Counted from the stretch's first letter, positions 2,875-41,900 are shown. The stretch: DNA of 64,000 bases from Selaginella moellendorffii (GCF_000143415.4 NW_003314317.1:1-64000), one strand, 5' to 3'. The notes: generated from the letters alone by a model not told the origin. Numbers and translations: made by a program.

Positions 2875-3640
2875 CTTTAGGCACGTTGACCTTATCCAGT
2901 CAACGACAAATGTTGACTTCATGTCAGAACCTGCTTTAGACCTAAAAGTTGACTTGGTCAAAGACCTAAAAGGTGACCTAAAAAAGTGCCACGTAGACTT
3001 TCCTTGATCATATAGAAACGAGGAATATCTTATCGCTTCACCCGTATGGTATGCCCTCCCTGGCATGGCCGGAAGCAAAAAACCAAAATGGCGTGCTACT
3101 TGCTCTTGGTTGCGTGACACACCAAAAATAAAAAATAAAAAAAGGCCTGGTTTGAGAGATTGAGATTTTGATAACGTCCTTCCATGCAGTGGATTTTTAT
3201 ATTGTTTTCCGGGGAAGGGAAAATAAAGCTGCTAGTCTCTTTTGTCGTGGCCTTTCCCAAATCACTGTGATGTTTTGGCCCTCCTCGAGAGAGGTGATCA
3301 TGCCATTGTTATCTAATGTATCTCAAGATTTTTCGCGAAAACAATGGTTTTGATATGAACAAGATGAGTAACAAAGATCGCATCTGGAAGCACTGACATA
3401 TAAATGTAGGAGACGAAAGGTACCAAACAGAGGCCATGCCTAGTTTAGCTAAAATGTGTCATAGTTTGTTAGAAGAGAGAATGTGTATAGCTAGTTAGCG
3501 AAGTATGGCGGGCCTGGCTTCTCCCAGCTTTTAAAATCAATGCTCTCATGGAATGGAGTGAAGTGGAGTGGAGAGCTTTATTTTAGGTCGTAGGAGGAGG
3601 AGGAGCTAGGAGAGAGCGCTAGAGAAGAGGCGAATCATCG

Positions 3641-6600
3641 ATGGAAGCCTTGAGCAAAAATGGTGGCCGGATGAATGAAGGAGCGCAGCAGCGCGGCGGC
3701 ATCGACATGTTAGGAATCCCGCGGCCGCAGCTCCCGCGCGACGCCAGGGGATCGCTGGAGGTGTTCCAGCCGCAGCAGCAAAGATCGGGCGAGAGGGATG
3801 CTGGCATCGCCATCGGCGTGGCGGATTCTCGAAATTTCGGCCGAAGCGGTCGCTATGGCGCCCAAGAACAGCAGGTTTTCGGCGGGAGGTCTGTGGAGAG
3901 CACGCTGGATTTGGCGACGACGAATGCCGGGTGGAGGAGATCGCCGTCTGGCTCGGGTTCCAAGAGTCCAGTTTGCGGCCATTTCCAAGGGGATTTTTCC
4001 TCCATCGCCAAGCCGCAGAACGATCGCGCTGCCGCCGAGCGTGCGGCGGAATGGGGGCTGGTTCTCAAGGCCGATGTCGGCTCCGGCAAGATCCAAGGCG
4101 TGGGGGTCCGGAATAACTCCGGGGACTCCAAAACTAGCGGGAGAAACTCTGGGAGGAGGACTTCGGAGGAGTCTTCCTCGGATGCTGGCAGCGAGGCCGC
4201 GCTTGGGGGTCGGCCTCACATTCCGAGAGTCTCGGAAGATTTGAAGGACGCGCTCTCATCGTTCCAGCAGACGTTCGTAGTGTGCGATGCGACCGACCCG
4301 GAGCTTCCAATTCTCTATGCGAGCGCTGGTTTTTTCAGCATGACGGGATACACTGCCAAGGAAGTGATCGGCCGAAACTGGTGTGGAAGTGCTACTTGTT
4401 GGTTTGATCTCACGTTTTTTTTGGTTTTCCAGTCGATTCTTGCAAGGTACCGAGACGGATCCAGCGGATGTTTCCAAAATCCGAGTGGCTTTGGAGCAAG
4501 GGAAGAGCTTCTGTGGACGGCTGCTAAACTACAAGAAGAATGGAACGCCATTTTGGAATCTCTTGACAATAGCTCCAATCAAAGACGAAGATGGCAAGGT
4601 TCTTAAGTACATCGGGTCAGTTTTCCTCTATTTTCCAATTCATTCCATACTCAGATTGAGTTTCACGTGTAGGATGCTGGTTGAGGTGAGCCAGTTTACA
4701 GAGGGATCTAAAGACAAAGCTGTTCGTCCGAATGGAATGCCAGAGTCTCTGATCAAGTACGATGGTGAGTTATCTTATATGTTCCAGCTTCATAAATATG
4801 GTTTTGTATAAAAAGATTTTTGCTGTCGCTGTTGATGTTCAAAAGCTCGACAGAAAGACAGCGTCGTGAGCTCGGTGTCTGAGCTCGTGGAGGTTTTCTC
4901 GACGTCGAAGACAGACCAATCCAACGACCACGATCGACGAGCTAGTGCTGGCAAGCTTACAGATGTTCCTGAGGCTAGTCCCGTGAAGGCGAGCAAGAGA
5001 ACTCGCAGGTCATCCAGCTTACTGTCCTTTTTGAGGTAAATTTCGTTTATTTTTTCCTGCTAGAGATACCGACTGAGTAGATGATGCCAGGCGACATGTG
5101 AGGGCTTCGGCTGAGATCGATCAATTGACGCTGAAGACTGCCGACAATGTCGACGACTTTCCTGAGGACTTTCAGAGAAAGAAGGAAATTCGAAGAGGCA
5201 TCGACCTGGCAACCACATTGGAGCGTATCGAAAAGAACTTTGTCATCACTGATCCCCGTCTCCCCGACAATCCAATCGTAAGATCTCAGCCTGTTTTGCG
5301 CCGATTCATATGCAATATTATTACAACCGCAGATTTTTGCATCCGATTCCTTTTTGGAGCTAACGGAGTACAGCCGAGAGGAAATTCTGGGAAAAAACTG
5401 CAGGTCAGGATCAATACTTGACAAGAGTGGTAAACTTTTGATTGAAAAATTACAGATTCTTACAAGGACCCGATACGAATCAGGAGACGGTGACTAGAAT
5501 TCGGTATGCCATTCGGGATCAGAGAAGCATCACTGTTCAACTTCTAAACTACACCAAACGGGGTATGCACCCTCTGTTCGTGAACGCTTCTCCTAATGTT
5601 CTTGTCAATTTAACAGGGAAGCCTTTCTGGAATTTATTTCACTTGCAACCCATGAGAGACAACAAGGTGCCCTTGTTTCTGCTGCAAACCATGTAGATAA
5701 GCTAATCTTGTATATGCATGCAGGGAGAGTTGCAGTACTTTATAGGAGTTCAGCTGGATGGAAGCCAGCATTTTGACAAAGTTCGCAAGGGGCTTCCTGA
5801 CAAGGTCGAGCACGAGGGCGTTCAAGTGGTAAGTGCCATATCACAAGCAGGATATTTTGTTCAGCGATCTTATGCTGCTGGTTTAGATCCAATCTGCAGC
5901 TGGCAACGTGGATACTGCAGTTCGTGAACTCCCAGATGCAAATCAGGTAAAGCTAGATAGAAGAATGATCACCAAGCTCTCATGTTCTGCTTAACGCTGT
6001 GTGTAGAATGTCTTTGAGATTTGGAGGAATTACTCAAAAAAAGTGTGTCCCAAGCCTCACAAGGTTCACAGTACTTCCTGGGCAGCCATAAACAAGGTGG
6101 AAGCTGTTCAATGAAACACTGACATTAATTTGCTTTTGACAGGTTGTAAAAAAAGATGGACTCTTGAACTTACAGCATTTTCGGCCAGTCAAAGCTCTTG
6201 GTTCTGGTGATACCGGAGGGTGAGTACTGTTTTAAACTGAATGTGCCAGCTTAATTTCTGTTTGGGGTTTGTAGTGTTCATTTAGTGGAGCTACGAGAAA
6301 CCGGCCAATTTTTTGCTATGAAAGCAATGGAGAAGTCGATTATGCTCAATCGAAACAAGGTAAATTAACTATCGACAGAATATATCAACTCCTGCTGTGA
6401 AATAGGTTCATAGAACACTCATGGAACGAGACATTTTGGACATGATGGATCACCCTTTTCTTCCAACTCTCTATGGATCGTTTGAGGTACACTTTAGATT
6501 TTAACATGATCATATAGTAAAATAATTCTGAAGTGTAGACTGAGGCACATGTATGCTTGATCACGGATTTCTGTCCAGGAGGCGAACTCTTTCTTCTTCT

Positions 6601-23949: not shown

Positions 23950-27320
<3,371 letters not shown>

Positions 27321-28190: not shown

Positions 28191-29391
28191 CTCTCGAGCG
28201 ATTCCGGCGTTCCTTTCCTCAGTCTCCGGGCCATGTAAATTTTCACGTACTCTCCGAAGCTCACTGGGCGATACCGGGATGGATGATCCGCGTCGACGAA
28301 TTCCGGCAGAGGCTTGATCGTCGCCTCCACCGCTGGGTTGAAGAAGCTGGAAATGGAGAGCCTCGCTCTTTCGGGATTAGCCAAGACTCGGTGCTCAAAA
28401 CTCTTGTAACGCTTGTTGGTTGCGATCTGGAACAAAGGTTATATGGAAACTTCCATTTCGTATCATCTTTTCTTTCTTACCTGCATTTGATCTCCAAAGT
28501 TGACGACGAGAGCTCTCCGGTTTGTGTTGATTGGCACCCATGGCGATTCTTCGTTCTTCCTCATTTGCAAGCCGGGCACATCGTCGATCAAAAGGATATT
28601 GAGGAGACCTGGAGAACAAAGATACAATGAAGAACGCGAAGGAGAATGAAAAAAAAAGTGAACTTTCACCTTGATCACAGTGGCTGCGAACTCCCAGCAC
28701 TAGATCCGGCTGGGGGCAAGGGAGGTACCTGTTGAAGAGCAAAAGCTGGTCTAATGGATCGAATTCTCTCTCAAGACGATCGGGACGTAATCCCAGGCTC
28801 TCGGACGCAAGCGATATCACCTTGAAGGCCAAAGCTCGGATTTCCTGGCAATACTTCACTGCTGCGCTCCTGAGAAGGAAGAAAGATTGAAGAGAAACGA
28901 AGGAAAAGAAGAAGAAGAAACCTGAATGATGGAGGATTGCTTGGCCAAGTTTCGAAAGTTTCTTCACTGAGTGGATGGCACTTCCCGACCACCAGGAAAT
29001 CCCTCCAGTCCTGGACGCCAGTTTCATCCAAGCGCGTCCCATATCTCGTTCCATTCATCTTTGGCTCGCCACTAAACAGTTCCATCCTTTGCTCCATCGG
29101 CTGTCCAAAGAATTCCAGTGCCGCTCGGACAATCCCCTCCATGGTCTCCTCTGAAACGCCATGGTTTGTGACTTGGAAGAATCCCCACTCCCTGGAAGCC
29201 CGCTCGATCTCGCCCACTATTCGCTGCCTGCCATGGCTGGATTCCAGATCTAGCAAATCTATCACTGGGATTCTCTCCTCGTCCTGGACCTCACCACTGA
29301 ATCCATCAGAGAAGCAAACGTAAGCTTCTGGAACTTTGGTCACGCCTTGCTCCACGAGAGTTGGAACCGGAACAGCTTGAGCGTACACCAT
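28187..29391 (-). CDS. DOXC 2OG-Fe(II) dioxygenase (DMR6/F3H-like superfamily), 4 exons
   Basis: IPVIDL, EWGFFQVTNHGV, DWRD, NRYLPCPQPDLVLG, HCD (HxD), VVNFGDQ, EHRV, RLS. Confidence 0.94.
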
Positions 29392-29492
29392 GTCGGAAAA
29401 GGAAACAGAACAAACCTCTATCACACATTCTTTTGATCTTTCTCAGTAGAACTGACCTTTATTATTATGACAAATATCGTGACCTTTTTGGG

Positions 29493-31199: not shown

Positions 31200-31505
31200 A
31201 TGCACTTGGAGAGCAAATACTATTCCAGCAATGAGACGCACGAGGTTTCGAGGGCAGCAGAAATTGCACGCCTCACATTGGGTGTTTTTGACGAAGCACC
31301 AGTGGGGAAACTTGGGATAACACCCAAAGCATCACAGGTTGTGACGCTTCTCACTCGAAACCAATTCTGGGACTTGTGTTCGGATATGTTGGACGAGCGA
31401 TCCAAGCAGCACGAGGAATGGATTGAGCAGACCTTCACTGATGACCAAGATCTCAACTTCGTGCGCTACTTGAGGGAGGAGGAACGAAAGAACTCTAGAA
31501 AATAA
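31200..31505 (+). other. Orphan ORF or terminal exon (101 aa), possibly a degenerate gene with exon-like pieces from about 30955
   Basis: Protein-like composition and GT/AG-bounded pieces upstream, but the phases do not join cleanly; no family recognised. Confidence 0.3.
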
Positions 31506-31565
31506 GTTTTTGGTCTCCATCATTCTCGTTTTGGAAGTGTGGAACCACAAAGATTCACTAGTTTA

Positions 31566-33889
31566 TTATTGCTTTCGACAAATCCAGAAAGAGCTCGATC
31601 CATAGTCAATCTCTCCGACAGCGCTCGCATCCGCAAGGAAAGTAATGCCAACCAGATTGAGGTTTGCAAACTCACTGTTAGCTGCAGACTCCAGAGCTAT
31701 GGTAGAGATCTGGTTCATTTTCACTTCAAGGCCTGATTTGTAACCTCCCTTTGTGTTTGATATCTCTTGGCCAGTGAAGCCAAGAGATTTCAAGGTTGAA
31801 TTTGCCAGCCAAACTCCGGGAGATCCTAAAATTTATGACAAAGATTTCATTAGACAGCGAAAGTGGAAGCCAATATTGACAATTACCAGTGTCGAGAATA
31901 GCTGGGACTTCAATCTTTGTGTTCCCATTCTCAATTTCCACGACAAGCCAAGGCAATCCACCAAGTATTTTCCCTCTTGTAGCTCCTCTGTATAAAGCAA
32001 TGGTTCATACTTTTGAAATCTATAAATCCAATAGCATACCTTGGAATGCTAGCAGTCTCCAGTATTGGTCGATCGATCAATCTGATCTGCCACGACTCCT
32101 CCGCATCAGGTCCAGCAGAAAAGTCCAGTAACATTCTTGTTTTAGCAGCAAAGAAGTAATTTGACCCCAAGACGAAGCACGGGCTGTCATATGCAACAAG
32201 AGCTCGCACATCCACACCGTTCACTTGAAGCCTTATGATCTCTCCATCGCTTGCCTCATGCCCTTGCCCAAAGACGATGTTCATGTCTTTACCAGCAATG
32301 ACTGTTCCCAGAGCACCAGTGTCAATTGCAAACTCAATATAGCCGCTTCTCTCTGCGTCGACAAACAATGTTGACGTGAAGTGATACTGATCCGTTACTT
32401 TGGCTTCATAGACTGTTGCTGGAAAAGAAGAAGAAAGAAAATAAGGAGAGAAAAGAAACGAAGATTAATATTTTAACACCTTTGGCTCGAGTTGTCACTA
32501 GACTTGACTTTGCAAACGCCAAATCTGTGACAGAGCACATATGTCAATCGAGAGAGAGAGTGAGAAAAAAAAAATACAAACCAGAATATAGAAGGGATGT
32601 TCTCCTGCAGGGGAGACCCAAGGATCCAGTGAAAACTCCTGGATGTCCTGTCATAATATTATATAGATGGTAAAATCAAGTTGTACTTAATGGTTTCTCT
32701 ATCGCGTGTGTGAAGAGACGTCCCCGTGGGTTTGTAGAGCCTCTAACAGACAATGGCTATCTCCATAGATACGACGACGCTATGATTCAATAGTCTATGC
32801 TCTTGAGAGTACTTTCGATAACTAACCTGGACGTGGAGAGTTCCAGCCTGATGGCTCTATCCCAAGAAAGCGCAGTGATTTACAGTCTGGATGTGTGTCG
32901 AGTTAGAAAAGTTCTCGGGGGAACGAGTAACAAACCAGTACGAGCTTTGCCTGCTAGCAGGAGAGCTTGTGGCGATTTTGAAAAACGCGCATGACCTGTG
33001 CCATGCAAAAGGCTAGTTTAAAACGAAAAGTTCTTCAAACACAGATCAACTAACGAGCGCTCGAAGCTTGTCTTGCTTTTCCATGATTGAGCATCGTTTG
33101 TCCAGTCCAGGCCGAAAGTCCTGTGGCTGAGAGGAATAAAACATTAGAAGGTGAAGCCATGAGATTAAATCCCCAAACCAGAACTTAGAGCTTTGCCTGG
33201 TGGTGAACCTGGAATGCCTGATAGCGATCTAGCAAAGAACGCTGTGTTTGTGTGTGAGAAAGATTGATTAAATCGTCTTGTGAAAGCTGAACTAACCAGA
33301 AACTCGGGCTTGGCCTCCAGGTGACGTTGATCTGGCATAAGCTCCTGCTAGGAAAATGAGAAGGTCGTCTTGATAGATCGAAAGCTCCAAGACTCACCAC
33401 GAAGTCCCGCGTCGCAGATAATCTGGAGGCTCCCGGATCCTTCCATCCACGAAAATCTTGGAAAACAAATCGCAAAAGAAAGATCAAATCGATCATTGAG
33501 AACTAACCGGTATTTCGAGGACGATCGCTAGCGCTCATGGTCATTCTCAATCCCGCGTTCTTGGAGGCCAGGAGTCCTGCATTTCAAAGCAGCGGCAATG
33601 GATCATCGCGAAATATCGGCGACCGCGAGACTGGAGGCAAAGAACTGACCGTGAACCGGCGACAATGCGCTCGAATGCTCGAGAATCGACAGCGATCGAG
33701 GGGCTGCCGGATCGATCATCGAGAATCCGCCTTTCTTGATCAAATCCGGATGATGATCGCGTCCTGCATTCGATCATCCGCCACACACAGATGGAAATTT
33801 CCGCAATGGAAGTCGATCGATCTACCCGATCCGAGTGCTAGCGCCTTCGCTTCCAATGGGAATGCCATGCAAGAGCTCCACACCGCCAT
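31566..33889 (-). CDS. 14-exon gene (about 481 aa): phase-1 micro-exon array + tandem retropepsin-like aspartic protease domains
   Basis: Exons 33889-33826, 33763-33650, 33576-33508, 33439-33398, 33347-33297, 33241-33179, 33126-33055, 32995-32936, 32886-32827, 32647-32582, 32524-32480, 32418-32040, 31987-31887, 31825-31566. All are GT-AG and give one open frame; motifs FAIDTGA...VLGSNYF and AILDTGS...LVGITFL...IDY. Confidence 0.75.
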
Positions 33890-34062
33890 CGCCAAACCAC
33901 GCTCACGCTCTCTTCTTCTTGAATTACCAATGAAATTGACCCCGCTACTTCACGTTTTACTGAAGCGCCAGCTTTCACGCTTTTTACTTGTGTAGAGGTC
34001 GAATCTCGCCAGTAACACTTGTTCTGGTAAGTCCTTCTAGGGTTCTAAAGACAGAGTTGGAG

Positions 34063-36734
<2,672 letters not shown>

Positions 36735-38955: not shown

Positions 38956-41900
38956 ATGCCGGCTGCCACAGCGGCCAAGCTGATTGTGGATGCGCTGCTG
39001 CAGCGCTTTCTGCCGCTCGCGCGACGCAGGATCGACACGGCACAGGCACAGGTAATCTTTCGGGGATGATCGACGGGTGAGTGATCTTCGTTGGAATTTC
39101 TTTCTTTCTTTCTCTAGGATGGGCAATATCTTCGCGCGTCTGATGCTGCCTACGAGCAAGTATTGGATTCGCTGGCTATGGTGGCTCGTCACACTCCAAT
39201 ACCTCTTCTGGAGGCACTTCTTAAATGGAGAGAAAGGTGAGTGGTCTTATCTAAAACGAACAAGAAAAACAAGAATTGATGTGATTGGCAATGCTGTCTC
39301 GTATGAGCAGTGAATCCCCGAAAGGAGCCAACGATGCTTCGACTTTTCAAAGGAAAGTGAGTTGGAACTCCACTTTTTTCTCTCTTCCTGTGCTGAAACT
39401 TAGATTCGTGTAGCTGGCCGTGGAGTGTATATTTTGCTCAGCGTGTATACGTTTTGTGGAGTGCTGTCCACAAGAAGGGCTCACAGGTATTTCACCAGTG
39501 CCTTATTTCCAAGTCCTAGACTCTCATACATTCTTCTATGGACAGAAACACTGTGGAATGGTCTGGAGAATTTTGTTTTCGATTGGCTTATCAATGCCGA
39601 CAGGTATCTGGTTTTTCTGATAAACTGTGATGAACCAACACGCTCTTTTATTTCAGAGTTGTTAGCCAGACAGATTATCCGTCCTTATTTGATCTTCGCG
39701 GATTGCTCTTGGACCTCGTTGCTCAATTGCTTGGCGCTTTGTCCAGAATAAGGCAAGTTGAAATTCCTTCAATGTTAACTATAACATGAAACTATACAGA
39801 TTTAGCTCCATAACTGAGCGTTTCTTTAACGAGTTGAATACTCGTCGCATTGATACGAACGTGACAAGAAGCGAAACATTAAGCATCATCCATGGAATGC
39901 GGTATCTCAAGCTCGGGGTATTTGAGGAAATTGTTCTGTAGTCAATTGGGTAATCTTCTTCTTCTTCTTCTTCTTCTTTTTTTGCAGGTTTCATCACTTG
40001 GGGGACTTAATGCTAGCACGTCATTTGTAGCCAAAGCCAATCCTTTGAATCGAATGCCAGCGAAGAAGAAGAGTGAACTCCATCATGCGTTGTGCAACAT
40101 GCTTTCAAGTGTTCTTGCCCCTCTCACAGACGGTGGTAGTGGCCAGTGGCCGCCTGCAGGAGTTGATCAGGCATTGACTCTGTGGTATGATGCTGTTCTT
40201 CGAATTCGGAACCAGCTTATGCACTGGATGGAGAGGCAAAGCAAGCATGTTAACGTAAGTAAAAGATTTTCCAAATGAATTCGTCGTCAACAACGTTTAC
40301 AGGTTGGATACCCTCTTGTTACAAGTCTTTTGTGCCTAGGCGATCCAGAGTATTTTATAAGTTCATTCAATCCTCACCTCGATCAACTGTATAAACTGTT
40401 ACGGGTGAGCAGGGAAGTTAAAATTCAGTATTGCTCTAAACCTTTTTTTTGTCTTAGGAGAAAAATAACAGATCGGTAGCATTGGAATGTCTTCACAGAG
40501 TGCTTCGCTTCTATTTGAATGTGTACGCTGAAAGCCAACCGCAAAATCGGGTATGGATGACCTTGCACAGTGTTACAGCTCAATTGTTGAGCTGTTTGAA
40601 AAAAGGCTTTTTTGCGCTGGATGTTCAACACGAGAAGCTTGTCGACCTTTGCGTGACAATAGCCGAGAGTAATCTGGACTTCGCGATGAATCACGTGATA
40701 TTGGAACTTCTTCGGACAGAGAACCTTAGCGAGGCTAAAGTCATCGGTCTGAGAGGACTTTTGGCTATAGTTTCGTCCACTTCGGCCGAGCAACGTACAG
40801 ATGATTCCCGGCTCTCTTTGACGTCATTTCGTGGATCACCGACATCTTCTTGGTCATCAGCAACCTCGGCCGTTTTTACGTCATCTCGTCACAGTGCTGC
40901 AGCTCGTGTTGATATTCCTTCCAGCACTCATGATATTGGACCATATATACCAAAAGTTCGAGCTGCTCTTGGTTCTATTATCAAAGCATGTCACAGCACT
41001 TATGGGGGTGCATTGCTTACTTCCTCGAAGGCAACGCTGGGTAAGTTTTGCGACTCTTTTCGACAGTTTTTTCTCACAGTCACGTAATTTTGACAGATGC
41101 TCTGAGCAAAGAAAAGCCTCAAGGCTGGCTTGTGTTCCGCTGGGCTCTGAAATGTGTACCACATTTGATACCAGAGCAGTGGCGCAACGATCGGATGACG
41201 GAAATTATCCCGGTTTATGCAATCAGTGTTGAACCTGGTGTTCGTGAGGAAGCCGTGCAGGTTCTTTTCAGAACTGTTCGGGACCTTCCTCAAAGCCGCT
41301 TTGCCGTCATGCGAGGGATGGCAAATTTTATATTTCGGCTCCCGGACGATTTTCCAATACTGATCCGGATTTCTCTGGATCGTCTCGTACAGCTTTTAAG
41401 CTCTTGGCGCGTGTCTCTTTTGGAAGAGCTTTCGGACAGCAAAGACAACTATAACAAAAGTTCACGTCATTCGGCACCCTCGGAAGCCCGGTTTCATCCC
41501 TCGGGTTTAGATGCAGTGGGTCTTATATTTCTGTGCTCGGTAGACGTTCAAATTCGGCATACGGCTCTGGAACTTTTGAGGGCCGTTCGAGCTCTCTACA
41601 ATGATCTCTCAAGGATGTCTTCAAAGGAGAAGAACAATAAAAGGCCACATCCAGACCATACTTACGTGATCGACGTATTCGAGGAAGCTGGTGTATGTAT
41701 ATTTTCGTTGTTATAATGATTTCGTTCTAAAGTTCTTTTCTCCAGGACGACATTGTCCAGCAATGCTACTGGGACTGTGGAAGATGGTACGAAATGAGAA
41801 AAGAGTGGGATGCCATTCCACCAGAACTATCGCTGCAAACCGTACTGGAGAGCTCGGACAAAGGTCGTTGGGGACGATGTTTAAGTGAACTTGTTAAGTA

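Follow-up and report, generated by a model that had tools for sequence, protein, structure and literature searches.

The question raised by this locus is whether a plant gene codes for a single-chain aspartic protease built of two retropepsin-like lobes. The window, i.e. the whole stretch of DNA analysed here, comprises 64,000 nucleotides (nt) of Selaginella moellendorffii (GCF_000143415.4 NW_003314317.1:1-64000), and the gene in question is SELMODRAFT_422290, which lies on the minus strand with its last three exons occupying positions 31566-32418. Its product was identified by exact-sequence look-up as EFJ15877.1 / D8SIJ5_SELML, annotated as a "hypothetical protein" of 469 amino acids (aa) and hereafter called P0001, to which all residue numbers refer. 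Judging from the predicted models described below, the C-terminal 247 residues (223-469) are likely to form two retropepsin-like lobes in one chain and thus a small monomeric aspartic endopeptidase.

The exon map was obtained by threading the public protein P0001 onto the window and by reading the reverse complement of positions 31500-32700. Residues 223-469 are identical to the spliced translation of the three exons, all of which, like the other features of the gene given here, are on the minus strand. The exon at 32040-32418 codes for the whole of lobe 1 and contains the codon of Asp256 (32323-32321) within the AIDTGA motif, as well as the VLG motif at residues 306-308. It is followed by a 52-nt GT..AG intron (31988-32039) and by the middle exon (31887-31987), which provides the linker between the lobes and the strands with which lobe 2 begins, together with the codon of the second putative catalytic residue, Asp382 (31893-31891). 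A 61-nt GT..AG phase 1 intron (31826-31886) interrupts the Gly384 codon behind its first base, thereby splitting the second DTG as had been proposed earlier, and the last exon (31566-31825) supplies the remaining two bases of this codon and the rest of lobe 2 with the flap-like GGYKSG, the LVG psi-loop motif (441-443) and, before the stop codon TAA at 31568-31566, the C-terminal strand. The original prediction described three fragments spliced into two domains of about 120 aa. The spliced frame does hold both domains, and all the peptides quoted in that prediction are present in its translation, but the public model of the gene consists of 12 exons, not three, and reaches position 33889.

Reads of two raw RNA-seq runs were placed on positions 31300-34200 along with two RNA contig sets. 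One contig (X1) runs through the last and middle exons and 70 nt into the lobe-1 exon and so contains both joints, the 70-nt segment being the shorter side at the 52-nt intron. The joint over the 61-nt intron was also found in a contig from a different study (X2), which likewise covers the last exon, and in one raw read of run X6. Reads of the other run (X5) cover positions 32076-32269 in the lobe-1 exon; their first mates map to the plus strand, the orientation that most stranded libraries give for an RNA from the minus strand. Spliced transcripts of the gene are thus present in three studies, and SELMODRAFT_422290 is a genuine, weakly transcribed gene of S. moellendorffii. Five variants were observed in the contigs, three of them synonymous, one a Q-to-E and one a V-to-L replacement, with no gaps or frameshift; the pattern is compatible with constraint, five being far too small a number for a test.

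Both lobes carry the motifs by which this class of proteases is recognised. The active site of retropepsins has the form Xaa-Xaa-Asp-Thr/Ser-Gly-Ser/Thr/Ala with Xaa hydrophobic (PMC4140852), and two hydrophobic residues followed by D-T-G-(A/S), together with a downstream hydrophobic-hydrophobic-Gly motif, make up the psi-loop signature of retropepsins and pepsins (PMC4140852, PMC2761423). P0001 carries both the clan AA active-site motif and the psi-loop glycine motif in each lobe: AIDTGA at residues 254-259 precedes VLG, which lies 52 residues past the catalytic Asp of lobe 1, and ILDTGS at residues 380-385 precedes LVG, 61 residues past the catalytic Asp of lobe 2. A six-frame translation of the window contains just three instances of the strict motif, defined as two hydrophobic residues followed by D-[TS]-G-[STA]. 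In the gene, a single spliced frame has two DTG sites separated by 126 residues, each with its own hydrophobic-hydrophobic-Gly, which makes coincidence unlikely for so rare a motif. The other two sites retrieved with the strict pattern, at 26227 on the plus strand and 53990 on the minus strand, lie in unrelated frames and were rejected as chance occurrences.

In the spliced protein, residues 371-424 match the Pfam family Asp_protease_2 (PF13650) with a score of 31.2 bits, the cut-off being 24.3, and an E-value of 3.8e-7. Single unspliced exons gave no Pfam match, since the most diagnostic motif of lobe 2 is interrupted by the intron. Weaker Pfam matches of the spliced protein were to gag-asp_proteas (E-value 0.0024), PE-PGRS_C (0.02) and TAXi_N (0.069), and the NCBIfam profiles returned no match to the protease. 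Feature-based look-ups with lobe 1 alone lean towards the Asp_protease_2 and gag-asp_proteas families with scores of 0.91-0.93, which is to be taken as a lead only.

What follows on the fold of lobe 1 and the packing of the two lobes is based on predicted structures. The ESM Atlas model of the exact 469-aa protein has a predicted template-modelling score (pTM) of 0.55 and a mean predicted local distance difference test score (pLDDT) of 0.56 over the full length. In the Atlas structure search, residues from about 215 to 469 aligned over 224-239 positions with a template-modelling score (TM) of 0.71-0.75, normalised by the query and with predicted models on both sides of the superposition, to ten bacterial clusters of 284-457 aa, nearly all of them carrying Asp_protease_2 and many carrying PDZ. 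Lobe 2 alone reached a TM of 0.78-0.85 with single-lobe clusters, some of which are annotated as retropepsin-like. When lobe 1 (223-350) and lobe 2 (351-469) were given to ESMFold2 as partners, the interface score ipSAE (interaction prediction score from aligned errors) was 0.76 in three of three runs, compared with 0.02 for the best control. This mark is attained by 51 of 78 solved complexes, as against 2 of 108 mismatched pairs; such a pass may reflect memory of solved dimers and indicates likeness to them, not a measured interaction. Contact agreement between the runs was at least 97% and the partner pLDDT at least 86. Besides both DTG loops (254-260 and 380-387), the confident predicted interface takes in two helix-and-strand segments (309-327 and 441-459) and two N-terminal strands (229-237 and 357-362), and its best-defined contacts place residues 317-323 antiparallel to 451-458. 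When shifted by about 126-132 residues, the contact set of one lobe corresponds to that of the other, as a pseudo-two-fold dimer of the retropepsin type requires.

On the basis of these models, the following arrangement may be suggested. Each lobe would contribute one Asp-Thr-Gly psi-loop, so that Asp256 and Asp382 would face each other across a pseudo-dyad, and the linker of approximately 16 residues (341-356) would allow the lobes to pack around a pseudo-two-fold axis in the way the subunits of the retroviral protease dimer do, resulting in a single active site with no need for dimerisation. A flap-like hairpin would be added by each lobe, with VFGQGHE in lobe 1 and KGGYKSG in lobe 2, and the C-terminal strands of both lobes would form an inter-lobe sheet. 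In engineered tethered HIV-1 protease dimers, two identical units are joined C- to N-terminus by a short linker to give a monomeric enzyme, and segment 341-356 would play the role of such a tether; those molecules are artificial and have identical halves, whereas the Selaginella protein is natural and its halves are highly diverged. The 247-residue core has two cysteines and there is no obvious signal peptide in either of the start variants discussed below, so the protease is probably intracellular. Exons, splicing, motifs and the Asp_protease_2 match of lobe 2 are shown by the data, whereas catalysis, cellular location and substrate are inferred.

The nearest structural counterparts are bacterial. 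Two-lobed Asp_protease_2 proteins are already abundant, and uncharacterised, in Bacteroidota, Pseudomonadota and Planctomycetota, where they often possess a C-terminal PDZ domain. Like the Selaginella protein, they combine two retropepsin-like lobes in one chain, the core amounting to about 245 residues, and it is over both lobes that the predicted structures superpose. P0001 differs from them in having no obvious signal peptide and no PDZ domain, in being the product of a eukaryotic gene with spliceosomal introns, and in that no homology between it and them is detectable at the sequence level. No relative was returned by word-index protein searches with lobe 1, lobe 2 or the two-lobe core, no related locus was matched when bacterial genomes, viral contigs and metagenomes were scanned, and tblastn against plasmids and phages gave no match either. 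Sequence and profile searches of the PDB yielded only sub-threshold matches, among them plasmepsin-1 (E-value 0.46) and 7d66, a "Ubiquitin family protein" (1.2).

A stricter DNA pattern with two DTG motifs, applied to bacterial genomes, produced 49 loci, only one of which (L130, positions 3363-4532 on the minus strand) proved to be a real tandem Asp_protease with PDZ. It is found on the chromosome of the planctomycete Anatilimnocola sp. NA78 and codes for a protein of 390 aa, in which the lobes carry FAIDTGA and MIDTGL, the PDZ domain is C-terminal and the N-terminus, judged by eye, resembles a signal peptide. As in P0001, it is lobe 2 that gives the Asp_protease_2 match, whereas in lobe 1 only the surroundings of the DTG are recognised. 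The planctomycete protein is collinear with the core of P0001; the two DTGs, NL(I/V)G and the GLP(W/Y) with which lobe 2 starts are in register. The Selaginella protein is predicted to resemble the bacterial tandem proteins and to work like them, and is not assignable to their family, the similarity to L130 being not significant in a shuffle test.

In viral contigs, the loci (L001-L118) retrieved with a pattern of two DTGA motifs spaced by about 125 codons were rejected as mostly collagen-like GDTGAxG repeats of phages, probably tail fibres, and one viral open reading frame (ORF) with LLDTGANI repeats was taken for ankyrin-like, which is a candidate label only. Collagen-like GDTGAxG matches of this kind call for caution in motif-based searches for aspartic proteases.

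Compared with the known clan AA homodimers, such as HIV-1 protease (family A2), APRc of Rickettsia and the Ddi1 protease domain, the protein has the same succession of hydrophobic-hydrophobic-D-T-G-A/S and hydrophobic-hydrophobic-Gly motifs, lobes of about 120 residues and a predicted interface made up of the DTG loops and antiparallel C-terminal strands. Unlike these enzymes, which are obligate homodimers of one lobe, it consists of two fused and diverged lobes and has no polyprotein, transmembrane or UBL/UBA context. The Pfam scan of the 469-aa protein gave no match to UBL, UBA or PF09668, which sets it apart from DDI1-like proteins (A28), where UBL and/or UBA flank one retropepsin-like domain, as the original prediction had claimed. 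The further claim of that prediction, that the protein falls outside the standard plant protease families, is also supported, with no match to PF00026 and no gag, reverse transcriptase or integrase in the flanking ORFs scanned; the best matches are to retropepsin-type Asp_protease_2 and not to ordinary A1 proteases or retroelement polyproteins. The covalent pseudo-dimer of retropepsin-like lobes proposed there is supported at the level of predictions, namely by Asp_protease_2 on lobe 2, the two-lobed Atlas matches and the ESMFold2 interface. The expected assignment of the spliced protein to clan AA stands for the lobe 2 profile and the two-lobed structure matches but not for lobe 1, for which no significant profile match was obtained.

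Several points weigh against the fused-retropepsin reading. Lobe 1 has no significant profile match in Pfam, the best being RVP with an E-value of 0.22, and an exhaustive phmmer search with lobe 1 among 1.84 billion protein representatives recovered P0001 only. The lobes align with each other at the DTG only, and not significantly, in both BLASTP and hhalign; it should be mentioned that in pepsins, too, the similarity between the lobes is confined to the psi-loop motifs (PMC2761423). The shuffle test of L130 against P0001 gave a local z of 2.9 and a global z of 1.2, neither of them significant. The Atlas and ESMFold2 results both come from folding with ESM language models and represent one kind of evidence, not two independent ones. 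AlphaFold2 run without a usable alignment gave a pLDDT of 34 for residues 215-469 alone and 28 with a two-row alignment. These low values are due to the lack of an alignment for an orphan protein, and as a result there is no de novo model to compare with solved structures and the fold evidence is all ESM-derived. Expression is very low, amounting to 10 and 5 reads in two runs from each of which about 9 million records were sampled. Finally, the start of the protease is uncertain, as there are a 266-aa and a 469-aa form to choose between.

With regard to this start, the public model adds 222 residues from nine short exons ahead of the lobes, and residues 1-224 of P0001 match no Pfam family. The exon nearest to lobe 1 (32480-32540) spans 32524-32480 in the public model and would alternatively be the first coding exon, beginning at an in-frame ATG at 32540 that would give a protein of 266 aa starting 20 residues before lobe 1. 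It is separated from the lobe-1 exon by an annotated 61-nt GT..AG intron (32419-32479), mapped by threading of P0001 with a read depth of 0. Eight further annotated short exons, also placed by threading, lie within 32578-33889 and encode 208 residues. RNA depth was 0 over 32270-34015 in the runs sampled, which leaves the nine upstream exons (33889-32480) with no read support, and these micro-exons may be an artefact of gene prediction. A TATA-like element, CTATATAATA, at 32666-32657, a pyrimidine-rich tract at 32574-32550 and the ATG at 32540 are all located inside or beside annotated introns. Read from the sequence, CTATATAATA and the tract could be a candidate promoter of the short 266-aa form; the context of the ATG is not strong.

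Other readings of the protein can be weighed against this background. A reduced member of pepsin family A1, either a mini-pepsin or a nepenthesin/TAXI-like protein, would share with the Selaginella protein the single chain and the one catalytic Asp per lobe that also characterise the bacterial shewasins, and the weak plasmepsin-1, TAXi_N and PE-PGRS_C matches at DTGSxxxW in lobe 2 could be read in this way. These matches are, however, all sub-threshold and limited to the active-site motif, with TAXi_N scoring 13.8 bits against a cut-off of 30, and DTGSxxxW is found in the second lobe here and in the first lobe of pepsins. In addition, the core of 247 residues with 2 Cys is much smaller than the approximately 320 or more residues with several disulfides of A1 enzymes; an A1 profile match, a disulfide set, a propeptide and a signal peptide are all absent, a flap-like hairpin is apparently retained in both lobes, and the best profile and structural matches are of the retropepsin type, so membership of family A1 is highly improbable. 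A protein that has kept the fold as a binding module or inhibitor-like molecule and has no catalytic activity is also quite improbable. Yeast Ddi1, which has a retropepsin-like domain, has been described as not being a peptidase (PMC2761423). Against this stands the fact that P0001 has an intact Asp-Thr-Gly triad and an intact psi-loop glycine in each lobe. To our knowledge, retropepsin-fold proteins that lost catalysis have usually not kept them.

It could also be supposed that the fold is right and the gene is a relic of a Selaginella long terminal repeat (LTR) retrotransposon polyprotein with tandem protease domains, showing background transcription and having no cellular role. The orphan status of the protein in all the protein searches and the very low expression would fit such a relic. 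The reading frame is, however, intact through three exons together with the triads and glycines just mentioned, the introns are short, canonical and spliced in three studies, the contig variants lean towards synonymous ones (though there are only five of them), and the lobe 1 search gave no annotated Selaginella retroelement protein at an E-value of 0.001 or lower. There are no direct repeats of at least 60 nt within 10 kb on either side (22-42 kb of the window), and no gag, reverse transcriptase, integrase or other transposon domains in the ten flanking ORFs scanned, in line with the original prediction on both counts. Taken together with the ordinary host neighbours, the absence of LTR-like repeats and element domains points to a settled host gene and not to a recognisable part of a retroelement, and the relic is considered unlikely. 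That the gene is host-encoded, as was initially supposed, agrees with its canonical introns, spliced transcripts and plant neighbours.

A separate matter is where the fused protease came from. Acquisition of a bacterial single-chain tandem Asp_protease_2 gene by horizontal transfer, with subsequent loss of the signal peptide and PDZ and gain of introns, is suggested by the fact that, for the two-lobe region, the 99 nearest Atlas structures include 10 family sets, all of them bacterial (Bacteroidota and Pseudomonadota) with a similar core length, as well as by the collinear layout shared with the planctomycete protein. On the other hand, the taxa in the Atlas mirror what is clustered there and not ancestry, no significant similarity to any bacterial protein or genome searched was found, lobe 2 alone is structurally nearest to eukaryotic clusters (Mucoromycota and Nematoda) and the exon G+C content of 46.5% matches that of the window (47.5%), so such a transfer is rather doubtful. 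It may be tentatively suggested that the gene is an independent re-enactment, in a land plant, of the duplication and fusion from which pepsins have long been proposed to arise. The product would be a working monomeric mini aspartic protease of about 250 residues with two flaps and retropepsin-type lobes, lineage-specific and unrelated in sequence to A1 and to the bacterial tandem proteins. As to origin in general, retroelement domestication, bacterial transfer and an old lineage-specific fusion are all possible.

Natural single chains resembling two retropepsin lobes are the expected intermediates of the pepsin-type duplication and fusion, and a literature search found no characterised natural single-chain protein that still resembles two such lobes. 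If active, the Selaginella protein would be a small natural fused pseudo-dimer protease encoded by a eukaryotic host gene and a new type of plant protease beyond the A1, DDI1 and retroelement sets, and could be used to study the divergence of pseudo-dimers with regard to asymmetric lobes, the presence of two flaps and DTGA versus DTGS. If inert, it would be one more lineage-specific orphan.

The region around the protease gene is gene-dense. An Hsp70 gene is located divergently at 33988-36504 on the plus strand, with ORFs 33988-34734 and 35935-36504 matching PF00012 (E-values 4e-43 and 5e-51, respectively). Its RNA reads and contigs begin near 34048, with the coverage of 34016-34200 oriented opposite to the protease gene, and the annotated first protease exon (33889-33826) is only about 160 nt from the start of the Hsp70 transcript. 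The other neighbours are a 2OG-Fe(II) (2-oxoglutarate- and iron-dependent) dioxygenase gene at 28398-29424 on the minus strand (DIOX_N, E-value 8e-25) and, assigned from domain matches of flanking ORFs on the plus strand, a protein kinase fragment at 23950-24591 and a gene for a MOR2/PAG1 cell-morphogenesis protein at 40482-41713. On the downstream side, an ORF of 101 codons (31200-31505, plus strand), which matches no Pfam family and is devoid of reads over 31300-31493 in the sampled runs, is convergent with the protease gene and ends 60 nt from its stop codon.

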